Below are positions 4,868-57,817 of a stretch of DNA of 64,000 bases, piece after piece. Below the pieces are notes generated by a model that ran no database searches, had not been told where the DNA came from, and saw only the letters and a list, made by a program, of their open reading frames with translations. This DNA comes from Eukaryota sp. TZLM1-RC (lineage: Eukaryota > Protista > Metamonada: BaSk clade). The DNA is taken from the NCBI GenBank assembly GCA_040285825.1, contig JAUPSS010000004.1:3452550-3516549 (forward strand), given 5' to 3'. Numbering within the stretch: the first letter of the stretch is position 1; every line of letters starts with the position of its first letter. A program made the position numbers and the translations under genes.

Positions 4868-5893
4868 TGTTTTGAAGATATTGTTTTCTGTTTTTGAAAA
4901 TAATTTAAATTTATAAAAAAAATTACCAAACTCAAACGAAGTTATTGACGTTGAATCTGAAGCAGCAATTCCGCAACATTGCTCCCCTGCTAATATGGAA
5001 GATGCCAAACATACTCAAAAATATTGATGATTGCTGGTGTTTGGAGTAATACTATATTGATATGGAAATCGTAATTTGATAAAAGTATTGTTACTTCTAT
5101 GTTTTGAAAACAATAATTGGAAACAGAATAATAAATACCAGTAGTTTACAAACAACTTTGGGAATTTTGCCATTTACCCCAGAATTTTACAAACACGGTA
5201 AACAAATGCGTCCAATTTGTTATATTGTATTGTTATACCCGATTGCTGATTGTCTCTAATTAAGGTCGAATACACTAAAAATGCAATTGGGATCATGGTC
5301 CAATGGTAGGGCATCAGCCTCCAGAGCTGCAAGATCGTGGTTCGATTCCTCGTGGTCCCATAATTTTTGTGCAATACTTTTTGTGAAGACGATATATATA
5401 GGGTGCGACGATACCATTGAAATCAAATAGATTTCCATATTATAATGTGTTGGTGGCAGATTTTCCCTAACAAGCTGATAACCTCGTTCCAAAAAATTCA
5501 TTGAATCACATGGATTAATTGATCTCTGAGAAACTGCTTCCCTAAACAACGATGAAATTGGTCACTAATGTTTGAAAACTGTTGCTTTCAAATTTACATG
5601 GTAGAAATAACATAATAGTCGACTAGCAATATCTTTCCGAATACCTTTAAGCCCTCAATTCTACATCCACATTTTCAGCCTATAGGTTTTGTAGAGATTA
5701 AGCTTCTGCTTCATCAACTTGAAACAGATTGAAAGGGATTGACTATACGTTCCAACTGTGTACCATCTCTAGAATTGATTGAGCTGTGCAACTGTGATCA
5801 AAACACTTACTTATTTGGTTTGCATATTGGACTTCCCATAACTTTTGAACAATGTTCTGTTTTTGCGTTTATTTCTTGGTTCAAGTATAAACT

Positions 5894-17946: not shown

Positions 17947-20900
17947 ATGATATGTGTGCCATTCGAGCTTGGAGAGTCACACTTCTCTGATGTCTCTGCA
18001 CTTCATTGGATACCAGATGCTTCTCAGTTGGTGGTCGCTGTGTCCCATGATGTCCATCTTTTGTCATTGCCTGCAAAAGACTCAACCAAATGTTGCTCAA
18101 CATCGGATACAGTACTCTTTATTTCTTCACAAGCTAATAACTCCTTCACTTGTTCATTATCCAATGGTTCTTCTCATACATATAACCTCTTCAATTCTTC
18201 TTCAGACACTTCACTACCCTCGCAGTCACTCTCTCAACAGTTTCACCAAGCTCTAACGCTACCCAATGGCACTTCTATATTTCTCTCCTCCAACAAAACT
18301 TTTTCAATCAGACCTGATCTTGTACTACATCTTAAACTTCACACTAAATCAACTGCTCTTATTGCCTCTTTTGGGGACCTCCTCCTTTCTTCCTCTTCTA
18401 ATGGTACAGTCCGTTGCTGGGATCCCTCTTGCCTCACCTCATCTCGACCATCTCCTCTGTTCTCATTCAGAAGCAAGGAAATCTGGAAGTTAGGCAGAAC
18501 TGCCAGGATCTCAAGTATGGTCGCCTTTCCTTGCATGGAAGAGAATGAACATGGGCTTATTGGTGTAATAGGTGTCTCTTTTGGATCTTCTCTTTGTGTT
18601 TTCGGGGTTGATCAGAGTTTCTCCACAAAATCATTAATCAACATTCCCTGTATAAAACCTATATCTACAATATTAATTTCAAATCATTTTTATTTAAATT
18701 CTTTTTTGATTTGGGTTTGTTTTGATTCAGACTGTGAAATTTTTTTGCTTAATCCCAACAAACCTTTTGAATTATTGGAATTCTTCTCATTCAAGACCAA
18801 AAACACTATTAAACAACTTTATTTTTCTCCAAGTTCATCATTTATTGCGGCAATTGAGGGTAGTTCTAACACGTTAAGTATTTATAAATACTGTTTTTCA
18901 TTACCCTTTACCCGATTAAACATGCCTTTTTTAGATGAAATAGGCAAGAGGCCACAATCACTTGTGATTGATGGACAGTCGACAATCATTTTGAACGGCA
19001 ACCTTGTGACTTTTGGCCTAGATCGTTCTAGTAAAATATCAACCCAATCATTATCGTTTTTAAAAGAAAAGGATAATTTAATAGGAATTAAGGAGTATTT
19101 AATTAATTCAACTGACAAACACTTTGTCTTTGCTTTTATCTATAGCAATCAAACCCAATCAGTTGCTGTTTTTTCCCAACCCGGTTATGAACTGATTTCA
19201 GAAGTCACCGGAAGTCAAGCGGTTCTGATCAATAATAATTTTTTCCATTTATTTAAAGACTCATTTATTTATTGTCATAATATATCCAATTCCCCTTCTG
19301 TTTTATGGGAAATGAATATTACTTCTCTGATTGGAAGTAATTTTGACAATCTTGAATTGCTCAGTTCCAATTCTCACTTATCTAGTTATTTTCTCACTGT
19401 TTCTGGTAATTTATTTACATTTTATCAATTGAATTATGATGAAGAAAATTCCCGTGTTTCACACTGTTCTTTTAATTGTGAATCTAAATTATTTATTGAT
19501 ACTGATAATGTTTGTTTGTTTTGGAATGGTCTAAATTTCTGTTGCTTGGTGCTTGATTGTTCTCTGGTAGTTTTTGACTGTCGATCTGAATCAATCAAAC
19601 TAATCAATCAGATCGACCTTCCTGGTCAAATAGAATATGTTTTCTTTTCTAATCATTTACTTCTATGCCAAGCCGATTTTTGTCTTTATAGAATTGATTT
19701 AGTTTCTGATCGATATTCATTTGTTCAACATTTATCATGTGGCAAAGTTATTGCCACTCTCCATGATCGAATAATCAGCATTTCGAATTGTTTTATTTCC
19801 TCAAATATTAATAATGAATTTAAATTTAATTTATCAACATTTCCACTAGTCACTGAGCTTTTGTTGAGCTCTTTTAGTCACTCTGACCAAATTTCGGAAC
19901 AAATTTTGGTTAATATTCCTGGTATTGAGAAGATTTCACCATCAAAAGCAGTCAAAGTTGCTCTTCATTGCTGCTATCACAATCATTTTCAAATAGCATG
20001 TAGCCTTATTTCTCAGCTACTAACAAGTAATTCATGGATAGACAACAATGCTGAACTTCTGAATGATTTTATTCAAGTGCTGGTTTATTGTAAACAGATC
20101 AAAACTGCATTGACTTTTTTGATTGGTCTTCCATTTTCAATCAATAATGACCTTTATAATTCTTTAATTTCACAAATTTTGCATGAATCTTTTAAATCAA
20201 ATTCATTATTTATTTCTGTGTTCTGTCTTGGATTACTTTCAAATATTGATGGTTTATTGAGTTTATTAATTTATGTAAATAATGATTCTATTAAATCATT
20301 AATTCATTATTTTCTCACCAAGAATGACGACAGACAGGATGTAACTGAACTATTTGAATTTATTGAACTACCAACCAATGCTCCTCGTATATCAAATGAT
20401 TTTGACTTCCTTCCTATTTTGGAAACTGACCCCCATCTCGAAACAATCACTTGCCAGTCACTTTCCTCCCAAATTACCCATCAATCCAAACCACTCAAAA
20501 CGTTTATGGACACCGTCTCCATCACTTTCGACGCCCCTTCATGTCTTCCCGTCTTCCGTGTGGATAACGAAGGCAGGGAGCTTGACCCATTAGGGTGCAT
20601 CAAGTTGGAGGCTGAAGAAAGTGAATCTGACGATGAAGAGCAAGAAGAAGATGGGTCTATAATTCAAGTTGTTATCGCTAAACATAGTAGTGATGAAGAT
20701 CTTGATTATGATGACTTCAGCTTAGATGCAGCTCCTCCAACCAGATCTCCAGCTGCCAATCCCAGTTCTAGTTCGTCCAAGTCTCTTACGACAGCAGCTG
20801 ATGGTTACTTCACGAAAGCATTGGGTTTATTGGAGAAGGGTAGATTCAAGCAGGCGTTACTTGAGATAAAGGCTGGTTTTGGTAATCTTTCCAGAGACAA

Positions 20901-32835: not shown

Positions 32836-33693
32836 TGATGGGAATATGTATAACCCTGAACCCTTAGATGAGTTTCTTCCAAATAAAATCAAAAGAACGT
32901 CCACTAGTCTGCAAAGCTTCTCCTAGATCATTCGAGAAAGTCAGACCTTCCTTTCCTAAAGTGCTACAAATGTGAATGTCAATTGGAACAAATTGACTAT
33001 TTTTGGTTCGTTCACTAAACAATTGCTTTGACCACTCACCCATTTCAAAGGAATAATCATTTTCAGGATTCTTCCAAGAGCGATACTGTTGTACAATCAA
33101 ATATTTATTATTATTAATATTTTTTTCTCCATCAGACCAAGCATAGTGAATGTCACCTCAGCTTTGACAATGGGTCAATTTTTATATATCGAACATGTTG
33201 ATAAACACATTTGAGTAGATCAAAAATGCAATCAAGAACAATCACGAACAGCGTTGTGATTGATTGATTTCTTTTGTGTGAATTTTCGGCAAGAAAAGTC
33301 AGTAAATTCCTATTCTCAGATTTTGTATTTGACAAACATTGTGGAGGAGGAACATTTATTCTAATTCGCGTAATTGTTGAAAAAACTGGTCGTCTGATAA
33401 CACAAGAGCAAAATGAAGAAGAACCTACCGTTTTCATTGGCTTGAGAAAAGGTGTTCAATAAGCCTGACCTAATTTGCCACCCGTTCAACTCATCATCAG
33501 TTCAATGCATCAAATAAATAAATTAAATAAATTACAACTTTTGCTGCTAGGATTCAAACGGGCTATTGAGGTAGATTCGAAGGGTTAATGTTTTGGTTGT
33601 TTATATAGTGTTGGCAAATTGATTGAGGGGCAAAACAAGTTTACAAACCTTCTATTCATCCAAAGCTCGCATTCTCATTCTGTAACTTACACT

Positions 33694-40762: not shown

Positions 40763-42290
40763 AACAGAATTTTAAAGATAATTGTATCGTAAATTATTTG
40801 TCAAACTTTTTGAAAGGCCTGATTGTTGATTAACAACGGTTGATTTTTGTTGAACAATAATAAATGAAGTTCTTTTTAGAACAAGATGGAACCTAAAAGA
40901 GAACCCAACTTTTGCAGTTAAATTTGAAAACCCCAACTTCTGAACACACGATTTTGACAAAATTGTTAGTCATTAGTTGATCGGGCAATAATCAAAACTA
41001 AGGCTTCGAATACAAAAATGTTGTTTCAAATGTGAGGTTTGCAATTCTTTGATGAACTCGAACCCATTACAACGTTTAGTACAACACATACAGTTTTGAA
41101 AATGTAGTCAAAAGGAAAATCTAGGTTGATAGTGCTCAGAGCATCGAATCACCTTTGTATCAATGTAAGTTGACTTGACCCGGGGTGAGTCAAAACTCAA
41201 TGTGCAAAATAGGGGACCAACAATGTTGCGTTTCATGAACGTGATATGATTCATATTTGGAACCATTCTGCTGTCTTTTCATCGGCTGAACACAAGAAGA
41301 ATCGTTTTGCATGAAATGATCATGATTTATTGCTTTAAATGGCAACTGTTTCACTTTTGATAGAGTAAGTGGCCCAGCTACAATAAGAACTCCACAGAAT
41401 CCTATTTTTCCACAAACACATCTAAAAAAGTTGCTGGCGCGAGTTTTTACAAATTGTGTTATATCTGAAAACAAATTCAAAGTAGGAATTTCAAAACTTT
41501 AATGAAGACAAATCGTTGAGGAAAATGTGTTTATTGAATAATATTGAAGTGTAAATGAGACAAGTAAATTGCATAATGTTTGATGGTTATATTGTCAGCA
41601 CTGTCTAAATAAATGGCTGAACTGTTCATTGCTAGATCTTTGATTGGATTGGTTACAAGGATCAACTGAAACACAGTCGATAATTCAAAATTTGTCAATT
41701 AACCAGCAAGTACAGCATCTGGAATCCGTCTACCGAAAACTTCTGAGTAAAATTGTCAATCTTAATTCAAGAGGTGTTTCTGAATAGGCTTAAATACTGA
41801 AGAACCCAGACTTAAACATAACTAACCACCTACTGAAAATGTAAGGAAATCAATGAAATACATGAGTTAACGCTATCGTCTTTCCAGGGTGAAGATTTGT
41901 CCTTATTCAATGATAGAAAAATCGACTAGCAGTTTTTGTTCATGTAGAAAATGATGAACTATGAACTAGACTAGGTTCCATTGAATGAACGATGAACAAA
42001 CTATGAATTTCGAAGGAAATTGATCAACCTACCAACTAAAGTCCAATCTAACATCTTATATCAATGACGTAATATAATATCATCATGACGGCTAATAATG
42101 GCTTTTGAGTAGAGTTGCACAAAATACGTTAGCACATTCCGGTATTATTGCATTACTATTACTGCAGGCTTCAAGCATTTGTGATTAAACCCTGAAACCC
42201 AACAATCACCATTGATTGATATGATTTTAACCCCAGCAATCAAGCAAAAATGCCCCCCACTCAAAAATTAACAATTACTATTGACAAACA

Positions 42291-42314
42291 ACAATTAATC
42301 TTGGCAAGACAATT
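42291..42314 (+). promoter_or_regulatory. Candidate histone upstream motif (ACAATTAATCTTGGCAAGACA)
   Basis: Similar motif upstream of H3 (44386-44407) and between H2A and H2B (43549-43577). Confidence 0.55.
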
Positions 42315-42379
42315 TGCAAAATCAAACTCAAATTCTCAAACTCCTTTCTAATGCTGTATTCTTATCTTCATCGATCTCA

Positions 42380-42691
42380 ATGGCTGGCCGTGGAAAAGGT
42401 GGAAAAGGTTTAGGTAAAGGTGGTGCCAAGCGCCATAGAAAGGTTCTTCGTGAAAACATCCAAGGTATTACCAAGCCTGCTATTCGTCGTCTTGCTCGTC
42501 GTGGTGGTGTCAAGCGTATCTCTGCACTTATCTATGATGAAACCCGTACTGTTCTCCGTACTTTCCTCGAAAACGTGATCCGTGACTCTGTTACTTATTG
42601 TGAACATGCCAGAAGGAAGACTGTCACTGCCATGGATGTTGTCTATGCTTTGAAACGTCATGGACGTGTTTTGTATGGTTTTGGTGTTTAG
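42380..42691 (+). CDS. H4: Histone H4, 103 aa
   Basis: [21 protein letters not shown]...LYGFG; ATG at 42380. Confidence 0.99.
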
Positions 42692-42705
42692 GTTTTTGTT
42701 TTTGG

Positions 42706-42721
42706 GGTGTTTTTCAACACT
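42706..42721 (+). promoter_or_regulatory. Histone 3' UTR stem-loop of H4 (GGTGTT-TTTC-AACACT), AATAAA at 42722
   Basis: 6-bp stem/4-nt loop shared by all histone genes here. Confidence 0.85.
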
Positions 42722-43089
42722 AATAAAGCTTTTAAATTTGATTTATTTGTTGTTTTAAATTAGCTTATAATTTTCTATAATTTGTTTGAAACTGATTATT
42801 TAATTTGGAATCGTTGACTAACATTCTCATCATTTATAAGACAATAGCTTGAATTGTACTTGCCAAGACCTTGTAAAAGTTAAAGCCATAAAGTGTTGGT
42901 CAATTAACCATCTTCTGGACGTTTTGCTTCAGGTAAATGTCAAGCGTCCTCATTTACAGATTTTGCATGCATTAACTGCCACCTAGGGCTCAATTACTTT
43001 GATTCTAGGATTCAGTATTTGCAGTTTTTGGTTCTTTAAGAAAAATAAGAAGGACTTTTTATTTAGAAAATCACATTTATTACCCAAAT

Positions 43090-43105
43090 AGTGTTGAAAA
43101 ACACC
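43090..43105 (-). promoter_or_regulatory. Histone 3' UTR stem-loop of H2A
   Basis: GGTGTT-TTTC-AACACT on - strand; AATAAA at 43076-43081. Confidence 0.85.
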
Positions 43106-43117
43106 ATGCAAAACAAC

Positions 43118-43501
43118 CTAGATTTCCTGGGAAGCTTGTTCTTCGGCTTCAACACGAGCCTTGGACCCCTTGGGAAGGAGATCGGAATGAATATGAGGAA
43201 GAACACCACCAGAAGGAATCATGATATGAGACAACAGCTTACTGAGTTCTTCATCATTGCGGATAGCCAAGAGAATGTGTCTAGGGACGATACGGGTCTT
43301 CTTGTTATCTCTAGCAGCGTTACCAGACAATTCAAGGACCTCAGCAGTGAGGTATTCAAGGACAGCAGCCATATAAACGGGAGCGCCAGCTGCAATACGT
43401 TCAGCATAGCGACCTTCACGGAGGTAACGACGGATACGACCTACAGGGAATTGGAGTCCCGCTTTGAAGGAGAGAGTACGAGCACCAGTTTCTTCAGCCA
43501 T
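43118..43501 (-). CDS. H2A: Histone H2A with H2A.X-type SQEI C-terminus, 127 aa
   Basis: [30 protein letters not shown], terminal ASQEI. Confidence 0.98.
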
Positions 43502-43548
43502 GAGAGATGAATTAATGAGGATGAGGAAATAGAATTTCAATTTCAACA

Positions 43549-43577
43549 CGACAATTTTGATTGTTGCAAGATTGTCG
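43549..43577. promoter_or_regulatory. Candidate bidirectional H2A/H2B promoter element, CGACAAT-N15-ATTGTCG enclosing TTGCAAG
   Basis: Inverted 7-mer in the 149-bp divergent intergenic region; shares ACAATT..TTGCAAGA with H3 and H4 upstream regions. Confidence 0.55.
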
Positions 43578-43650
43578 TTTGTGGCAAACCATTGAATCAG
43601 CTTGTTTTTGCTGCAAAAACTAAATCCCAATCACCATTTCTCTCAATCTC

Positions 43651-44085
43651 ATGCCTGGAAAGAAGTCTGTAAAGTCTACCAAATCCATCAAGGGAGTTCC
43701 CTCCAAAGCCCCATCAAAGGCTCCTGCCAAAGCTGTAAGCAAGGCTGTTGCTGAAGGAGGTGCTGCCGCTGCTGTCCCCAAGCGCAAGAAGGCCCGCAAG
43801 GAGACATGGGCTACTTACATTTACCGTGTCCTTCGCCAAGTCCATCCCGATACTGGTATCTCCACCAAGGCCATGGGAATCATGAACTCTTTTGTCAATG
43901 ACATCTTTGAACGTATCGCCACTGAAGCTTCCCGTCTTGCTCGTGTTAACAAGAGAAATACCCTTTCTTCTCGTGAGATTCAGACTGCTGTTAGATTATT
44001 GCTACCTGGTGAACTCTCCAAGCATGCTGTTTCTGAAGGTACCAAGGCTGTTACCAAGTTTACCTCTGCTGGTGAAGGTGAATAG
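43651..44085 (+). CDS. H2B: Histone H2B, 144 aa
   Basis: [42 protein letters not shown]. Confidence 0.99.
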
Positions 44086-44101
44086 ATTTGTGGTTTTTGA
44101 T

Positions 44102-44117
44102 AGTGTTTTTCAACACT
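44102..44117 (+). promoter_or_regulatory. Histone 3' UTR stem-loop of H2B
   Basis: AGTGTT-TTTC-AACACT followed by GATAAA. Confidence 0.85.
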
Positions 44118-44385
44118 GGATAAATTTGTTGTTTAATGTGTATTTTAATTTAAAAGTTTTATTGATGTTTTCATCAGGATTGCAGTTTTTGGGGAAATAC
44201 AAATGACAATTGTTCAATCAAATTGGGATTTGCTAAACTTGTTGTTCCTAAACAGAACCCACATTGAATATTTCAATAGTTCCATATAGGAAAAGAATTA
44301 AGTGCACATCTAATGAAGAGTGACAACAAAGCCGTAAGTCTACACAACCAAACCACCAAAAACTAACCATCCAACAAAAGCAAAT

Positions 44386-44407
44386 GACAATTGATTCTTG
44401 CAAGACA
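44386..44407 (+). promoter_or_regulatory. Candidate histone upstream motif of H3 (GACAATTGATTCTTGCAAGACA)
   Basis: Matches the H4 upstream motif at a similar distance (~65 nt) from the ATG. Confidence 0.55.
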
Positions 44408-44470
44408 TTTTCCCTGCTCTGAATTTCTGCTCAATTACAATGCAGAATGACATAATCCTGATCTACACTA

Positions 44471-44878
44471 ATGGCCCGTACTAAGCAAACCTCTCGCAAG
44501 ACTACCTCCACCAAGACTCCAAGAAAGCATTTGGCTACCAAGGCTGCTCGCAAAGCTGCCCCCGCTACTGGTGGTATCAAGAAACCCCATCGTTATCGTC
44601 CTGGTACCGTTGCTCTCCGTGAAATCAGAAAGTACCAAAAGTCTACTGAGCTGTTAATCCGTAAGCTACCCTTCCAACGTTTGGTTAGAGAAATTGCCCA
44701 AGAGTTTAAGGGTGAGTTGAGATTCCAAGCATCTGGTATCTCTGCACTTCAAGAAGCTGCTGAAGCTTACCTTGTTGGTTTGTTTGAAGATACCAATCTC
44801 TGTGCTATTCATGCTAAACGTGTTACCATTATGCCCAAGGATATGGCCTTGGCTAAGAGAATTCGTTCTGATTTTTAG
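44471..44878 (+). CDS. H3: Histone H3, 135 aa
   Basis: [37 protein letters not shown]. Confidence 0.99.
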
Positions 44879-44893
44879 TTTGGGGTTATTAGA

Positions 44894-44909
44894 GGTGTTT
44901 ATCAACACT
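44894..44909 (+). promoter_or_regulatory. Histone 3' UTR stem-loop of H3
   Basis: GGTGTT-TATC-AACACT; AATAAA at 44916. Confidence 0.85.
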
Positions 44910-45184
44910 CGTTTCAATAAAATCTTTTTTTATTATTGCATTTATGAAAAATGTTATCAGGTTCTATTTACATCGAGTTTTTTGATCATCTCTTATTTAA
45001 ACAAAGAAAGTTCAACACAAAAGATAGGTCAAGCCATTATACACTGATTGCATCCATTATTTGAAGGCACGGTTTTTCTATAAGGAATGTTTGTCAATGA
45101 CAAACATGTCATCAATCTTGTCTTGTCCTCTACTACTAATGGCGATGATTCTTCATGCCAGATGTTTCTCTCCACTGATCATTG

Positions 45185-45691
45185 ATGCCTGGTATCACTG
45201 CTACCTCTCCCGTTTCTCTATCCGATCAATCCCTCTCCTCTGTTGTTTACACGTGTTCTGCCATACTTGAGCAACTTTTGGATGTGGAAGACCATACTTG
45301 TGACTCATCATTTGGCTCTGAACCTACCGTCAGCTTTCCTGTTTGGATTAGAAGAATTGTTTCTAAATCAGAAGCCTCTTTGGAATGTGCTTTTGTTGCC
45401 CTCTACTATCTTTCAAAGATACAAGCAAAGTTTCCTCAGCTTCGCTATTCTTCCACTAATGTTTATCGCTGTTTCCTTGTTGCGTTCATGCTTGCTGCCA
45501 AGTTTTGCGAAGATTCTACCTTTCAAAATCCTAGCTGGAGAATTATTGGTTATTCTTTTTATTCCCTTGAAATTCTTAATGCTATGGAAGTTGAATTTAT
45601 TAAACTTCTTGATTGGAATTTGCACGTTTCTCCAAATGATTTACAAGGTTTTCTTTCTGATTATAAGAATATTTTTGATAAGTTGTGCTAA
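45185..45691 (+). CDS. PHO80/PCL-like (P/U-type) cyclin, 168 aa
   Basis: ALYYL, NVYRCFLVAFMLAAKFCED, LNAMEVEFIKLLDWNLHV. Confidence 0.9.
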   Translation: MPGITATSPVSLSDQSLSSVVYTCSAILEQLLDVEDHTCDSSFGSEPTVSFPVWIRRIVSKSEASLECAFVALYYLSKIQAKFPQLRYSSTNVYRCFLVAFMLAAKFCEDSTFQNPSWRIIGYSFYSLEILNAMEVEFIKLLDWNLHVSPNDLQGFLSDYKNIFDKLC

Positions 45692-45973
45692 ATGTGTAAT
45701 AAATTTATTTAATAATGTTTTTTCTTAACCTTTATTGATTTTGTATGGTAAAGAATAGATCTTAATATTTGTTTATTACACCTTTAATCTCAAAACATTA
45801 TGGAGATTTGTCATTCACTTTGCTAATGCTGAACAATCGGTCCAACAGTGTCTACTTGGCAGCAGTGAATCAAAGTGTAAACGAATGAGGGAAAGAGTAC
45901 TGTAATGTCCATCTACAGACACTGTAAGTAAACATTCAACTTGATGGTGCTCTCTGAAAGGTCATCAATTCCA

Positions 45974-53389: not shown

Positions 53390-53664
53390 CAATGATCAGT
53401 GGAGAGAAACATCTGGCATGAAGAATCATCGCCATTAGTAGTAGAGGACAAGACAAGATTGATGACATGTTTGTCATTGACAAACATTCCTTATAGAAAA
53501 ACCGTGCCTTCAAATAATGGATGCAATCAGTGTATAATGGCTTGACCTATCTTTTGTGTTGAACTTTCTTTGTTTAAATAAGAGATGATCAAAAAACTCG
53601 ATGTAAATAGAACCTGATAACATTTTTCATAAATGCAATAATAAAAAAAGATTTTATTGAAACG

Positions 53665-53680
53665 AGTGTTGATAAACACC
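53665..53680 (-). promoter_or_regulatory. H3 3' stem-loop, second copy
   Basis: Identical to 44894-44909. Confidence 0.85.
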
Positions 53681-53695
53681 TCTAATAACCCCAAA

Positions 53696-54103
53696 CTAAA
53701 AATCAGAACGAATTCTCTTAGCCAAGGCCATATCCTTGGGCATAATGGTAACACGTTTAGCATGAATAGCACAGAGATTGGTATCTTCAAACAAACCAAC
53801 AAGGTAAGCTTCAGCAGCTTCTTGAAGTGCAGAGATACCAGATGCTTGGAATCTCAACTCACCCTTAAACTCTTGGGCAATTTCTCTAACCAAACGTTGG
53901 AAGGGTAGCTTACGGATTAACAGCTCAGTAGACTTTTGGTACTTTCTGATTTCACGGAGAGCAACGGTACCAGGACGATAACGATGGGGTTTCTTGATAC
54001 CACCAGTAGCGGGGGCAGCTTTGCGAGCAGCCTTGGTAGCCAAATGCTTTCTTGGAGTCTTGGTGGAGGTAGTCTTGCGAGAGGTTTGCTTAGTACGGGC
54101 CAT
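53696..54103 (-). CDS. H3: Histone H3, second copy
   Basis: Protein identical to 44471-44878. Confidence 0.99.
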
Positions 54104-54456
54104 TAGTGTAGATCAGGATTATGTCATTCTGCATTGTAATTGAGCAGAAATTCAGAGCAGGGAAAATGTCTTGCGAGAATCAATTGTCATTTGCTTTTGT
54201 TGGATGATTCGTTTTTGGTGGTTTGGTTGTGTAGACCTACGGCTTTGTTGTCACTCTTCAATAAACGTGCACTAAATTTTTTTCCTATATGGAACTATTG
54301 AAATATTCAATGTGGGTTCTGTTTAGGAACAACAAGTTTAGCAAATCCCAATTTGATTGAACAATTGTCATTTGTATTTCCCCAAAAACTGCAATCCTGA
54401 TGAAAACATCAATAAAACTTTTAAATTAAAATACACATTAAACAACAAATTTATCC

Positions 54457-54472
54457 AGTGTTGAAAAACACT
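54457..54472 (-). promoter_or_regulatory. H2B 3' stem-loop, second copy
   Basis: Identical to 44102-44117. Confidence 0.85.
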
Positions 54473-54488
54473 ATCAAAAACCACAAAT

Positions 54489-54923
54489 CTATTCACCTTC
54501 ACCAGCAGAGGTAAACTTGGTAACAGCCTTGGTACCTTCAGAAACAGCATGCTTGGAGAGTTCACCAGGTAGCAATAATCTAACAGCAGTCTGAATCTCA
54601 CGAGAAGAAAGGGTATTTCTCTTGTTAACACGAGCAAGACGGGAAGCTTCAGTGGCGATACGTTCAAAGATGTCATTGACAAAAGAGTTCATGATTCCCA
54701 TGGCCTTGGTGGAGATACCAGTATCGGGATGGACTTGGCGAAGGACACGGTAAATGTAAGTAGCCCATGTCTCCTTGCGGGCCTTCTTGCGCTTGGGGGC
54801 AGCAGCGGCAGCACCTCCTTCAGCAACAGCCTTGCTTACAGCTTTGGCAGGAGCCTTTGATGGGGCTTTGGAGGGAACTCCCTTGATGGATTTGGTAGAC
54901 TTTACAGACTTCTTTCCAGGCAT
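54489..54923 (-). CDS. H2B: Histone H2B, second copy
   Basis: One V/A difference from 43651-44085; ATG at 54923. Confidence 0.99.
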
Positions 54924-55080
54924 GAGATTGAGAGATTGAGAGAAATTGTGATTGGGATTCAGTTTTTGCCACAAAAACAAGTTGATTCAATGTTTTGCCA
55001 CAAACGACAATCTTGCAACAATCAAAATTGTCGTGTTGAAATAGAAATTCTATTTTCTTTTCCTCATTAATTCATCTCTC

Positions 55081-55464
55081 ATGGCTGAAGAAACTGGTGC
55101 TCGTACTCTCTCCTTCAAAGCTGGACTCCAATTCCCTGTAGGTCGTATCCGTCGTTACCTCCGTGAAGGCCGCTATGCTGAACGTATTGCAGCTGGCGCT
55201 CCCGTTTATATGGCTGCTGTACTCGAATACCTCACCGCTGAGGTCCTTGAATTGTCTGGTAACGCTGCTAGAGATAACAAGAAGACCCGTATCGTCCCCA
55301 GACACATTCTCTTGGCTATCCGCAATGATGAAGAACTCAGTAAGCTCTTGTCTCACATCATGATTCCCTCTGGTGGTGTTCTTCCTCATATTCATTCCGA
55401 TCTCCTTCCCAAGGGATCCAAGGCTCGTGTTGAAGCCGAAGAACAAGCTTCCCAGGAAATCTAG
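55081..55464 (+). CDS. H2A: Histone H2A (SQEI tail), second copy
   Basis: Protein identical to the left copy; about 10 synonymous changes. Confidence 0.98.
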
Positions 55465-55476
55465 GTTGTTTTGCAT

Positions 55477-55492
55477 GGTGTTTTTCAACACT
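55477..55492 (+). promoter_or_regulatory. H2A 3' stem-loop, second copy
   Basis: GGTGTT-TTTC-AACACT; AATAAA at 55501. Confidence 0.85.
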
Positions 55493-55860
55493 ATTTGGGT
55501 AATAAATGTGATTTTCTAAATAAAAAGTCCTTCTTATTTTTCTTAAAGAACCAAAAACTGCAAATACTGAATCCTAGAATCAAAGTAATTGAGCCCTAGG
55601 TGGCAGTTAATGCATGCAAAATCTGTAAATGAGGACGCTTGACATTTACCTGAAGCAAAACACCCAGAAGATGGTTAATTGACCAACACTTTATGGCTTT
55701 AACTCTTACAAGGTCTTGGCAAGTACAATTCAAGCAATTGTCTTATAAGTGATGAGAATGTTAGTCAACGATTCCAAATTAAATAATCAGTTTCAAACAA
55801 ATTATAGAAAATTATAAGCTAATTTAAAAAAACAAACAAATCAAATTTAAAATCTTTATT

Positions 55861-55876
55861 AGTGTTGAAAAACACC
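55861..55876 (-). promoter_or_regulatory. H4 3' stem-loop, second copy
   Basis: Identical to 42706-42721. Confidence 0.85.
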
Positions 55877-55890
55877 CCAAAAACAAAAAC

Positions 55891-56202
55891 CTAAACACCA
55901 AAACCATACAAAACACGTCCATGACGTTTCAAAGCATAGACAACATCCATGGCAGTGACAGTCTTCCTTCTGGCATGTTCACAATAAGTAACAGAGTCAC
56001 GGATCACGTTTTCGAGGAAAGTACGGAGAACAGTACGGGTTTCATCATAGATAAGTGCAGAGATACGCTTGACACCACCACGGCGAGCAAGACGACGAAT
56101 AGCAGGCTTGGTAATACCTTGGATGTTTTCACGAAGAACCTTTCTATGGCGCTTGGCACCACCTTTACCTAAACCTTTTCCACCTTTTCCACGGCCAGCC
56201 AT
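55891..56202 (-). CDS. H4: Histone H4, second copy
   Basis: Protein identical to 42380-42691. Confidence 0.99.
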
Positions 56203-57817
56203 TGAGATCGATGAAGATAAGAATACAGCATTAGAAAGGAGTTTGACAATTTGAGTTTGATTTTGCAAATTGTCCTGCCAAGATTAATTGTTGTTTGTCA
56301 ATAGTAATTCTCAATTTTTGAGTGGGGGGCATTTTTGCTTGATTGCTGGGGTTAAAATCATATCAATCAATGGTGATTGTTGGGTTTCAGGGTTTAATCA
56401 CAAATGGTTGAAGCCTGCAGTAATAGTAATGCAATAATGCCGGAATGTGCTAACGTATTTTGTGCAACTCTACTCAAAAGCCATTATTAGCCGTCATGAT
56501 GACATTATATTACGTCATTGATATAAGATGTTAGATTGGACTTTAGTTGGTAAGTCGATCAATTTCCTTCGAAATTCATAGTTTGTTCATCGTTTATTCA
56601 ATGGAACCTAGTCTAGTTCATAGTTCATCATTTTCTACATGAACAAAAACTGCTAGTCGATTTTTCTATCATTGAATAAGGACAAATCTTCACCCTGGAA
56701 AGACGATAGCGTTAACTCATGTATTTCATTGATTTCCTTACATTTTCAGTACGTGGTTAGTTATGTTTAAGTCTGGGTTCTTCAGTATTTAAGCCTATTC
56801 AGAAACACCTCTTGAATTAAGATTGACAATTTTACTCAGAAGTTTTCGGTAGACGGATTCCAGATGCTGTACTTGCTGGTTAATTGACAAATTTTGAATT
56901 AACGACTGTGTTTCAGTTGATCCTTGTAACCAATCCAATCAAAGATCTAGCAATGAACAGTTCAGCCATTTATTTAGACAGTGCTGACAATATAACGATC
57001 AAACACTATGCAATTTACTTGTCTCATTTACACTTCAATATTATTCAATACACACATTTTCCTCAACGATTTGTCTTCATTAAAGTTTTGAAATTCCTAC
57101 TTTGAATTTGTTTTCAGATATAACACAATTTGTAAAAACTCGCGCCAGCAACTTTTTTAGATGTGTTTGTGGAAAAATAGGATTCTGTGGAGTTTTTATT
57201 GTAGCTGGGCCACTTACTCTATCAAAAGTTAAACAGTTGCCATTTAAAGCAATAAATCATGATCATTTCATGCAAAACGATTCTTCTTGTGTTCAGCTGA
57301 TGAAAAGACAGCAGAATGGTTCCAAATATGAAGCATATCACGTTCATGAAACGTAACATTGTTGGTCCCCTATTTTGCACATTGAGTTTTGACTCACCCC
57401 AGGTCAAGTCAACTTACATTGATACAAAGGTGATTCGATGCTCTGAGCACTATCAACCTAGATTTTCCTTTTGAATACATTTTCAAAACTGTATGTGTTG
57501 TACTAAACGTTGTAATGGGTTCGAGTTCATCAAAGAATTGCAAACCTCACATTTGAAACAACATTTTTGTATTCGAAGCCTTAGTTTTGATTATTGCCCG
57601 ATCAACTAATGACTAACAATTTTGTCAAAATCGTGTGTTCAGAAGTTGGGGTTTTCAAATTTAACTGCAAAAGTTGGGTTCTCTTTTAGGTTCCATCTTG
57701 TTCTAAAAGAACTTCATTTATTATTGTTCAACAAAATCAACCGTTGTTAATCAACAATCAGGCCTTTCAAAAAGTTTGACAAATAATTTACGATACAATT
57801 ATCTTTAAAATTCTGTT

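Follow-up and report, generated by a model that had tools for sequence, protein, structure and literature searches.

What is the hairpin that follows the core histone genes of the protist Skoliomonas litria, and how would it bear on the 3' ends of histone mRNAs in this lineage? We analyzed a 64,000-nucleotide (nt) stretch of contig JAUPSS010000004.1 (GenBank assembly GCA_040285825.1, positions 3,452,550 to 3,516,549 of the forward strand), called the window throughout, in which the same 16-nt inverted repeat lies a short distance downstream of genes for H4, H2A, H2B and H3. A first-pass annotation, made from the sequence alone, had taken this repeat as the sign of a lineage-specific SLBP/stem-loop pair acting on polyadenylated histone mRNAs. 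Our results lead to a related but different answer: the hairpin is probably the Skoliomonas form of the SLBP-type histone mRNA 3' stem-loop, and it would lie inside polyadenylated histone transcripts.

A hairpin follows all four core histone genes

The window is part of the genome of S. litria (Metamonada). In a protein search, its H2A protein was identical to the product of a gene on JAUPSS010000004.1 of GCA_040285825.1, which is filed as "Eukaryota sp. TZLM1-RC". S. litria is a free-living anaerobic metamonad of soda-lake origin, and the clade of barthelonids and skoliomonads that includes it is the sister group of Fornicata (PMC11316075). A histone quartet without introns occupies 42.3-45.0 kb of the window, in the order H4 (+), H2A (-), H2B (+) and H3 (+), and an inverted, near-identical copy of the quartet is found at 53.6-56.2 kb. 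The features of both copies are as follows, with amino acids abbreviated as aa, open reading frame as ORF, and the source of each call in parentheses.

42380..42691, + strand: H4 coding sequence, 103 aa, TAG stop (ORF, translation)
42706..42721, + strand: H4 stem-loop GGUGUU-UUUC-AACACU, 14 nt past the stop (motif search, fold)
42722..42727, + strand: AATAAA abutting the H4 stem-loop (0 nt), putative poly(A) signal (sequence)
43118..43501, - strand: H2A coding sequence, H2A.X-type, 127 aa (ORF, protein search)
43090..43105, - strand: H2A stem-loop GGUGUU-UUUC-AACACU, 12 nt past the stop (motif search, fold)
43076..43081, - strand: AATAAA, 8 nt beyond the H2A stem-loop (sequence)
43651..44085, + strand: H2B coding sequence, 144 aa (ORF, protein search)
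44102..44117, + strand: H2B stem-loop AGUGUU-UUUC-AACACU, 16 nt past the stop (motif search, fold)
44119..44124, + strand: GATAAA, a variant hexamer, 1 nt beyond the H2B stem-loop (sequence)
44471..44878, + strand: H3 coding sequence, 135 aa (ORF)
44894..44909, + strand: H3 stem-loop GGUGUU-UAUC-AACACU, 15 nt past the stop (motif search, fold)
44916..44921, + strand: AATAAA, 6 nt beyond the H3 stem-loop (sequence)
53665-53680, - strand: mirror H3 stem-loop, with AATAAA at 53653-53658 and coding sequence at 53696-54103
54457-54472, - strand: mirror H2B stem-loop, with GATAAA at 54450-54455 and coding sequence at 54489-54923
55477-55492, + strand: mirror H2A stem-loop, with AATAAA at 55501-55506 and coding sequence at 55081-55464
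55861-55876, - strand: mirror H4 stem-loop, with AATAAA at 55855-55860 and coding sequence at 55891-56202

A search of the window for the 16-mer RGTGTTTWTCAACACT (RGTGTT-TWTC-AACACT) returned eight exact matches, compared to 0.00 expected from shuffled sequences, and the relaxed palindrome GTGTT-N4-AACAC recovered the same eight sites and no others (0.12 expected). Each copy is located 12-16 nt past the TAG stop codon of an H4, H2A, H2B or H3 gene, exactly where the first-pass annotation had placed it, and the hairpin forms part of the minimum-free-energy fold of all four histone 3' flanks (H4, H2A, H2B and H3). We also found all four copies repeated in the right arm, as had been reported. That arm is a recent duplicate, and therefore the window provides four independent instances of the hairpin rather than eight. 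None of the non-histone genes in the window has the hairpin. Sites with one mismatch at 1860, 17053, 25360 and 33195 occur at chance level and adjoin no histone gene; the site at 33195-33208 is intergenic and was dismissed as chance.

The hairpin is confined to histone genes in three Skoliomonas genomes

The survey covered at least 14 histone clusters of S. litria and further clusters from Skoliomonas sp. GEM-RC1 and TZLM3-RCL, which yielded 105 distinct 3' flanks of H2A, H2B, H3 and H4 genes. The hairpin was present in 104 of these flanks, 94 with the strict core GTGTT-N4-AACAC and 10 with one change, and it recurs at the further S. litria clusters (loci L018-L029). The distance from stop codon to hairpin ranged from 8 to 39 nt across the three species, with a median of 15. 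The sole flank without the hairpin belongs to a divergent H2A gene of GEM-RC1 (locus L007). We then considered all core matches in 338 kb of Skoliomonas DNA and found 107 of 108 no more than 60 nt past a histone stop codon; the lone non-histone match falls within the coding region of Tfb2. Likewise, the hairpin was absent from each of the 77 annotated non-histone genes examined. These results bear out the earlier observation that non-histone genes lack the motif, extend its confinement to histone genes beyond the window, and demonstrate that the structure is conserved in relatives.

The H4 protein of the window is also encoded, without change, in the GEM-RC1 clusters, and an exact look-up with this protein retrieved Skoliomonas loci only. 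No sequence from Barthelona or from other metamonads was among the 120 matches listed in the H2A and H2B searches.

Two sets of atypical genes were noted in GEM-RC1. The L007 genes form a divergent H2A/H2B pair (L007:5479-6390) that stands apart from the main clusters, and its H2B is followed by a wobble variant of the hairpin, GGUGUU-UUUA-AACAUC, and then, about 20 nt beyond that, by AAATAAA; this H2A and H2B may be replication-independent or decaying copies. In addition, three H3 copies (L009:2254-2660, L011:2253-2659 and L013:2253-2659) are called as proteins of 126 aa. Their short calls reflect a premature in-frame TAG that precedes the usual TAA by about 26 nt, with the later codons and the hairpin intact, and could result from assembly error, pseudogenes or something else.

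Stem changes preserve pairing on the sense strand only

The 104 copies contain 10 substitutions in the stem core: C13U eight times (at least three events), A14G and C15U. All are transitions, together representing about five independent events, and each replaces Watson-Crick pairing by a G.U wobble when the sense strand is read, but by an A.C mismatch when the antisense strand is. Pairs 2-6 are paired on the sense strand in every one of the 104 copies. The closing pair (1-16) is G.U in 66 copies, A-U in 21, G-C in 12 and an A.C or A.A mismatch in 5, such that it is paired in 99/104 copies on the sense strand compared to 37/104 if read as antisense. The loop follows the asymmetric pattern Y-N-U-N and keeps a constant orientation with respect to the gene. 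Because the stem changes keep pairing only on the sense strand, these patterns indicate that the hairpin acts as an RNA element of the sense transcript and not as a DNA palindrome.

Conservation is strongest at particular positions. Stem position 2 is G in 104/104 copies (G-C in 103, G.U in one), the U-A pair below the loop (6-11) is found in all 104, and loop position 3 is always U; loop position 1 is U in 94 copies and C in 10. Thus, the positions that are read by SLBP, namely G2, the U-A pair under the loop and loop U3, are invariant or nearly so. SLBP makes a single base-specific contact, between G7 and Arg181, and binding requires this G (PMC10388802). In every copy, pair 4 is either G-C or G.U, and most copies close with G.U or A-U, in agreement with the first-pass description of a pyrimidine arm that is interrupted by a G with a partner C and closed by a weak pair. 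An H3 subfamily of S. litria (L020-L025) has the sequence GGUGUU-CUUC-AAUACU, in which pair 4 is G.U and the loop begins with C, and these variants show which hairpin positions tolerate change.

Double compensatory changes were not found in the five core pairs across the three species. Since compensatory exchanges are missing, the sequence itself appears to be read and not the shape alone, which points to recognition by a sequence-specific protein.

A poly(A)-type hexamer adjoins the hairpin and U7-type signals are missing

The sequence NATAAA is located within 30 nt past the hairpin in 85 of 94 copies, whereas shuffled flanks gave about 9. Hairpin and hexamer are separated by a median of 2-5 nt, often the hexamer is only 0-2 nt from the stem, and the pattern holds in all three Skoliomonas species. 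In the window, AATAAA follows the stem-loops of H4, H2A and H3 after 0, 8 and 6 nt, respectively, and GATAAA follows that of H2B after 1 nt. The proposed coupling of hairpin and poly(A)-type hexamer therefore stands, as does the spacing of 0-8 nt given for it. Among A/T-rich hexamers, AATAAA also shows the strongest enrichment 3' of long non-histone ORFs (21/85 versus 7.3), and AAUAAA is the poly(A) signal in the non-Giardia metamonads studied so far (PMC11529991). Published RNA-seq data from Skoliomonas were generated from poly(A)-selected RNA (PMC11316075).

We also searched the flanks for the signals that accompany U7-dependent processing. ACC(C)A follows the stem in none of the 94 copies, and the first three nucleotides vary (GGA, TTT, AAT, GTT, CAT and others). 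A purine-rich histone downstream element (HDE) for U7 was not found: the purine fraction of the downstream sequence is 0.27-0.35 and its T fraction 0.50-0.58, and a 9-nt window with at least eight purines occurs downstream of only 9/94 copies. The 5' flank is U-rich instead of A-rich, and CCAAA is missing. Given that the ACCCA flank and the purine-rich HDE are absent and that NAUAAA adjoins the hairpin, the histone mRNAs are probably polyadenylated, with NAUAAA serving as the poly(A) signal and the stem-loop contained within the 3' untranslated region (UTR).

The stem is shared with histone genes of unrelated eukaryotes

The Rfam model Histone3 (RF00032), applied to the whole window at its gathering score of 34 bits, gave no match. 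Nevertheless, the Skoliomonas hairpin resembles the animal element described by this model in several respects. Both have a stem of 6 base pairs and a loop of 4 nt, both are positioned after the stop codons of core histone genes, and they share G2 paired with C, U-A as the last pair before the loop, and U as the first and third loop nucleotides. Relative to the animal consensus GGYYYU-UYUN-ARRRCC, the Skoliomonas sequence fits 13-14 of 16 positions, 13 with a closing G.U and 14 with a closing G-C. The differences lie in pair 4, which is G-C and not Y-R; in the closing pair, which is mostly G.U or A-U; and in the flanks, where Skoliomonas lacks CCAAA, ACCCA and the purine-rich HDE and has an AAUAAA-type hexamer directly after the stem.

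To place the stem in a wider context, we used a metagenome scan with H2B that provided 80 loci from unrelated eukaryotes (H2B proteins 64-84% identical) and 126 histone flanks. Close relatives of Skoliomonas were not found in this H2B scan, whose best matches reached 68-71% identity. The animal-type stem GGYYYU-N4-ARRRCC occurs in 41/126 of these environmental flanks, and many others have different GG....CC stems (for example, GGAUUU, GGAGAU, GGAAUU and GGCUAU). The core GUGUU-N4-AACAC is present at eight of the loci (L031, L047, L056, L059, L076, L086, L097 and L106); in seven of the eight, it forms hairpins in 11 distinct histone flanks, with H2A, H2B, H3 and H4 all represented. Six loci (L031, L047, L076, L086, L097 and L106) have the form GGUGUU-N4-AACACC. 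The flanks of the environmental GUGUU copies are mostly canonical, with CAAA-type sequence on the 5' side and ACCCA or ACAC on the 3' side (for example, CAATC-stem-ACCCA), and several are followed by purine-rich stretches. By these features, the environmental GGUGUU copies look like canonical processing sites. RF00032 detects the animal-like environmental copies at 37-39 bits and misses all of those with the GUGUU core, the GGUGUU ones included.

These comparisons change one part of the first-pass interpretation and uphold another. The G-interrupted stem is not supported as the mark of a lineage-specific SLBP/stem-loop pair: GGUGUU-N4-AACACC stands behind unrelated environmental histone genes with canonical flanks, and the G-interrupted stem thus belongs to the usual range of histone stem-loops in protists. 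Moreover, because the departure at pair 4 is shared by environmental copies with canonical flanks, GGYYYU/ARRRCC describes animals and not the whole family. By contrast, the prediction that standard models would miss the motif proved correct, and it applies to the environmental GGUGUU copies as well. Overall, the histone-specific, sense-strand hairpin with its hexamer, overlooked by Rfam, is retained from that interpretation, and the lineage-specific stem is not. A search of the literature text for the stem sequence yielded primer lists only.

What is particular to Skoliomonas can now be stated more narrowly. The environmental GGUGUU type has the same GUGUU/AACAC stem core and a U-rich loop, but closes with G-C and keeps its CAAA-type and ACCCA/ACAC flanks. 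In Skoliomonas, the closing pair is weak, both flanks and the purine-rich element are lost, and a hexamer adjoins the hairpin.

We also built a custom covariance model, R1, from 64 environmental histone stem-loops (consensus AAAC-stem-ACCAA), with all GUGUU types excluded. An unfiltered search of the window with this model placed the eight histone sites at ranks 2-7 and 12-13, all among the 13 best matches. Taken together rather than one by one, these matches point to a hairpin of the family type set between flanks that depart from it.

A stem-loop combined with a poly(A) signal has precedents. Histone genes of this kind are described in Physarum (PMC8600027), where the two signals are used alternatively (PMC8600027), and early-diverging fungi have been assigned an 'SLBP-SL-PAS' state with sparse U7 machinery (preprint 10.64898/2026.10.14.759114). 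As in Physarum, Dictyostelium and early-diverging fungi, most or all Skoliomonas histone genes have a stem-loop followed by a poly(A) signal, and U7-type signals are weak or absent. Skoliomonas differs from these dual-signal systems in its uniformity (104/105 flanks), in a near-invariant hairpin and in a hexamer that is usually only a few nucleotides away; in addition, the barthelonid and skoliomonad clade is a new lineage for this putative state. In Drosophila, maternal histone mRNAs are reported to undergo SLBP-dependent polyadenylation (PMC11997800), which offers a precedent for histone mRNAs with a stem-loop that depend on SLBP and yet are polyadenylated. The Drosophila mRNAs are a developmental special case in an animal with the full U7 machinery, whereas in Skoliomonas this would be the default mode. 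Histone transcripts of Giardia and Naegleria share their poly(A) signals with other genes, and SLBP is reported to be lacking (PMC11529991). No stem-loop is described there, in contrast to Skoliomonas, which is sister to the Giardia-containing Fornicata and keeps a conserved hairpin.

Layout of the histone clusters

At least 12 histone clusters lie within about 360 kb of one contig in S. litria (L018-L029; JAUPSS010000004.1, JAUPSS010000010.1), and they follow two layouts. In one, H4, H3 and H2B are on the same strand and H2A is divergent; in the other, a cyclin gene replaces H4, and H4 sits beyond H2A. The inverted duplication in the window (42300-45700 versus 53400-56400) comprises the quartet and an adjoining Pho80-like cyclin gene. 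Differences between its arms are scattered; 3' of H4, for example, one arm reads AATAAAGCT and the other AATAAAGAT. The histone promoter regions (42280-42330, 43540-43600 and 44385-44420) share a motif around TTGCAAGA(C/T), with GACAAT(T) nearby, which is a candidate for a common histone promoter element. The only Rfam match at gathering score in the window was a tRNA gene at 5289-5360 (57 bits).

Competing explanations for the hairpin and its hexamer

How, then, would the element work? From the sequence patterns, we infer SLBP binding, polyadenylation and a regulatory role for the hairpin. Every core histone mRNA would carry, in its 3' UTR, a hairpin of 6 base pairs and 4 nt that folds in the sense RNA. 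Its near-invariant sequence would most likely be read by a protein of the SLBP family, which could bring the four histone classes under a single post-transcriptional control acting on processing, translation and replication-coupled stability. The AAUAAA-type hexamer 0-20 nt past the hairpin would take the place of the ACCCA flank and the U7-pairing element. The 3' end would then most likely be generated by ordinary cleavage and polyadenylation slightly downstream, leaving the stem-loop in a short 3' UTR.

Several observations weigh against this model. RF00032 found nothing in 42300-45000 at E≤10, where only chance snoRNA-like matches appeared. The histone sites score just 9-12 bits with R1 (E of 0.5-4), and the alignments cover the hairpin only (model positions 6-21 or 7-20). 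The top R1 match, at 17 bits, exceeds all histone sites, and it is a chance site in a coding region (18872-18897, antisense inside an ORF of 1161 aa), which we dismissed. The A-rich 5' flank that adds to full-affinity SLBP binding in animals (PMC10388802) is absent from the Skoliomonas copies, and most copies close the stem with G.U or A-U, with a mismatch there in five. Finally, ATAAA is found within 60 nt past the stop codon in just 26/77 annotated non-histone genes, and the general role of ATAAA as a poly(A) signal therefore rests on modest statistics.

The most serious competitor holds that the stem-loop is the true 3' end. SLBP-dependent cleavage would occur just after it, with a U7 that is very divergent or missing altogether, and the mRNAs would not be polyadenylated; NAUAAA would be a back-up or alternative signal, or would help define the cleavage site. 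Such an arrangement would be in keeping with the retention of every SLBP-read position in the hairpin, with the stem-loop ends of histone mRNAs in animals and many protists, and with the alternative use of dual signals in Physarum. A hexamer so often 0-2 nt from the stem could also be masked by the bound protein. However, the ACCCA-type flank and the purine-rich downstream element are missing from the 94 copies, and the conservation of the hexamer in three species, far beyond the chance level, is difficult to reconcile with rare use. We consider this explanation rather unlikely. Less probable still is a convergent element, recognized by a different lineage-specific RNA-binding protein or acting through structure alone, and unrelated to SLBP. 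The failure of Rfam to recognize the hairpin, the departure of both its 5' and 3' flanks from the family consensus and the reported lack of SLBP in Giardia, a member of the sister group Fornicata (PMC11529991), would all fit with convergence. Yet the position, size and loop pattern of the hairpin and its diagnostic G2 and U3 are those of the family, the identical stem is found between canonical flanks in other eukaryotes, and a purely structural role would tolerate compensatory changes, of which none were seen.

A role in DNA, as a transcription-factor site, a terminator or a recombination signal of the histone clusters, is very improbable. In its favor, the core forms a perfect inverted repeat at the DNA level, and the clusters show extensive duplication and are in part palindromes. 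Against it, the loop lacks symmetry and its orientation relative to the gene is constant. Stem changes keep pairing in the sense RNA only, and the opposite strand would have A.C in place of a closing G.U. The position of the hairpin is also tied to the stop codon (8-39 nt) and not to cluster boundaries. We therefore favor an SLBP-type stem-loop inside polyadenylated histone mRNAs. A stronger version of that model, which we advance tentatively, is that hairpin and hexamer form a composite module in which SLBP would help or block the cleavage and polyadenylation factors 0-8 nt away, giving replication-coupled control without U7. If so, and given that the barthelonid and skoliomonad clade branches deep within Metamonada, the arrangement could resemble the ancestral mode of eukaryotes, with the animal U7 pathway built from it later.

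Implications

The system is of a known kind, a stem-loop with a poly(A) signal, newly seen in a little-studied lineage; it is unusually uniform and its hexamer is unusually close to the hairpin. A stem variant used by several unrelated eukaryotes, GGUGUU, escapes both the Rfam model and the animal GGYYYU rule, and surveys based on either will undercount histone stem-loops. Genome record GCA_040285825.1 is filed under "unclassified eukaryotes", and taxon-restricted surveys are therefore likely to have skipped it. The protist set of preprint 10.64898/2026.10.14.759114 was restricted to named clades, and the Skoliomonas assembly was probably outside its survey. Within Skoliomonas genomes, the 16-mer is a reliable annotation marker for replication-type histone genes.

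More broadly, Skoliomonas adds a very uniform case of a stem-loop with a poly(A) signal and no U7 signals to the debate on the evolution of histone 3' ends. It places a conserved, histone-wide stem-loop in the barthelonid and skoliomonad clade, the sister of the Giardia-containing Fornicata in which SLBP is reported to be lacking, and thereby helps to date the loss of the stem-loop/SLBP system within the metamonads.

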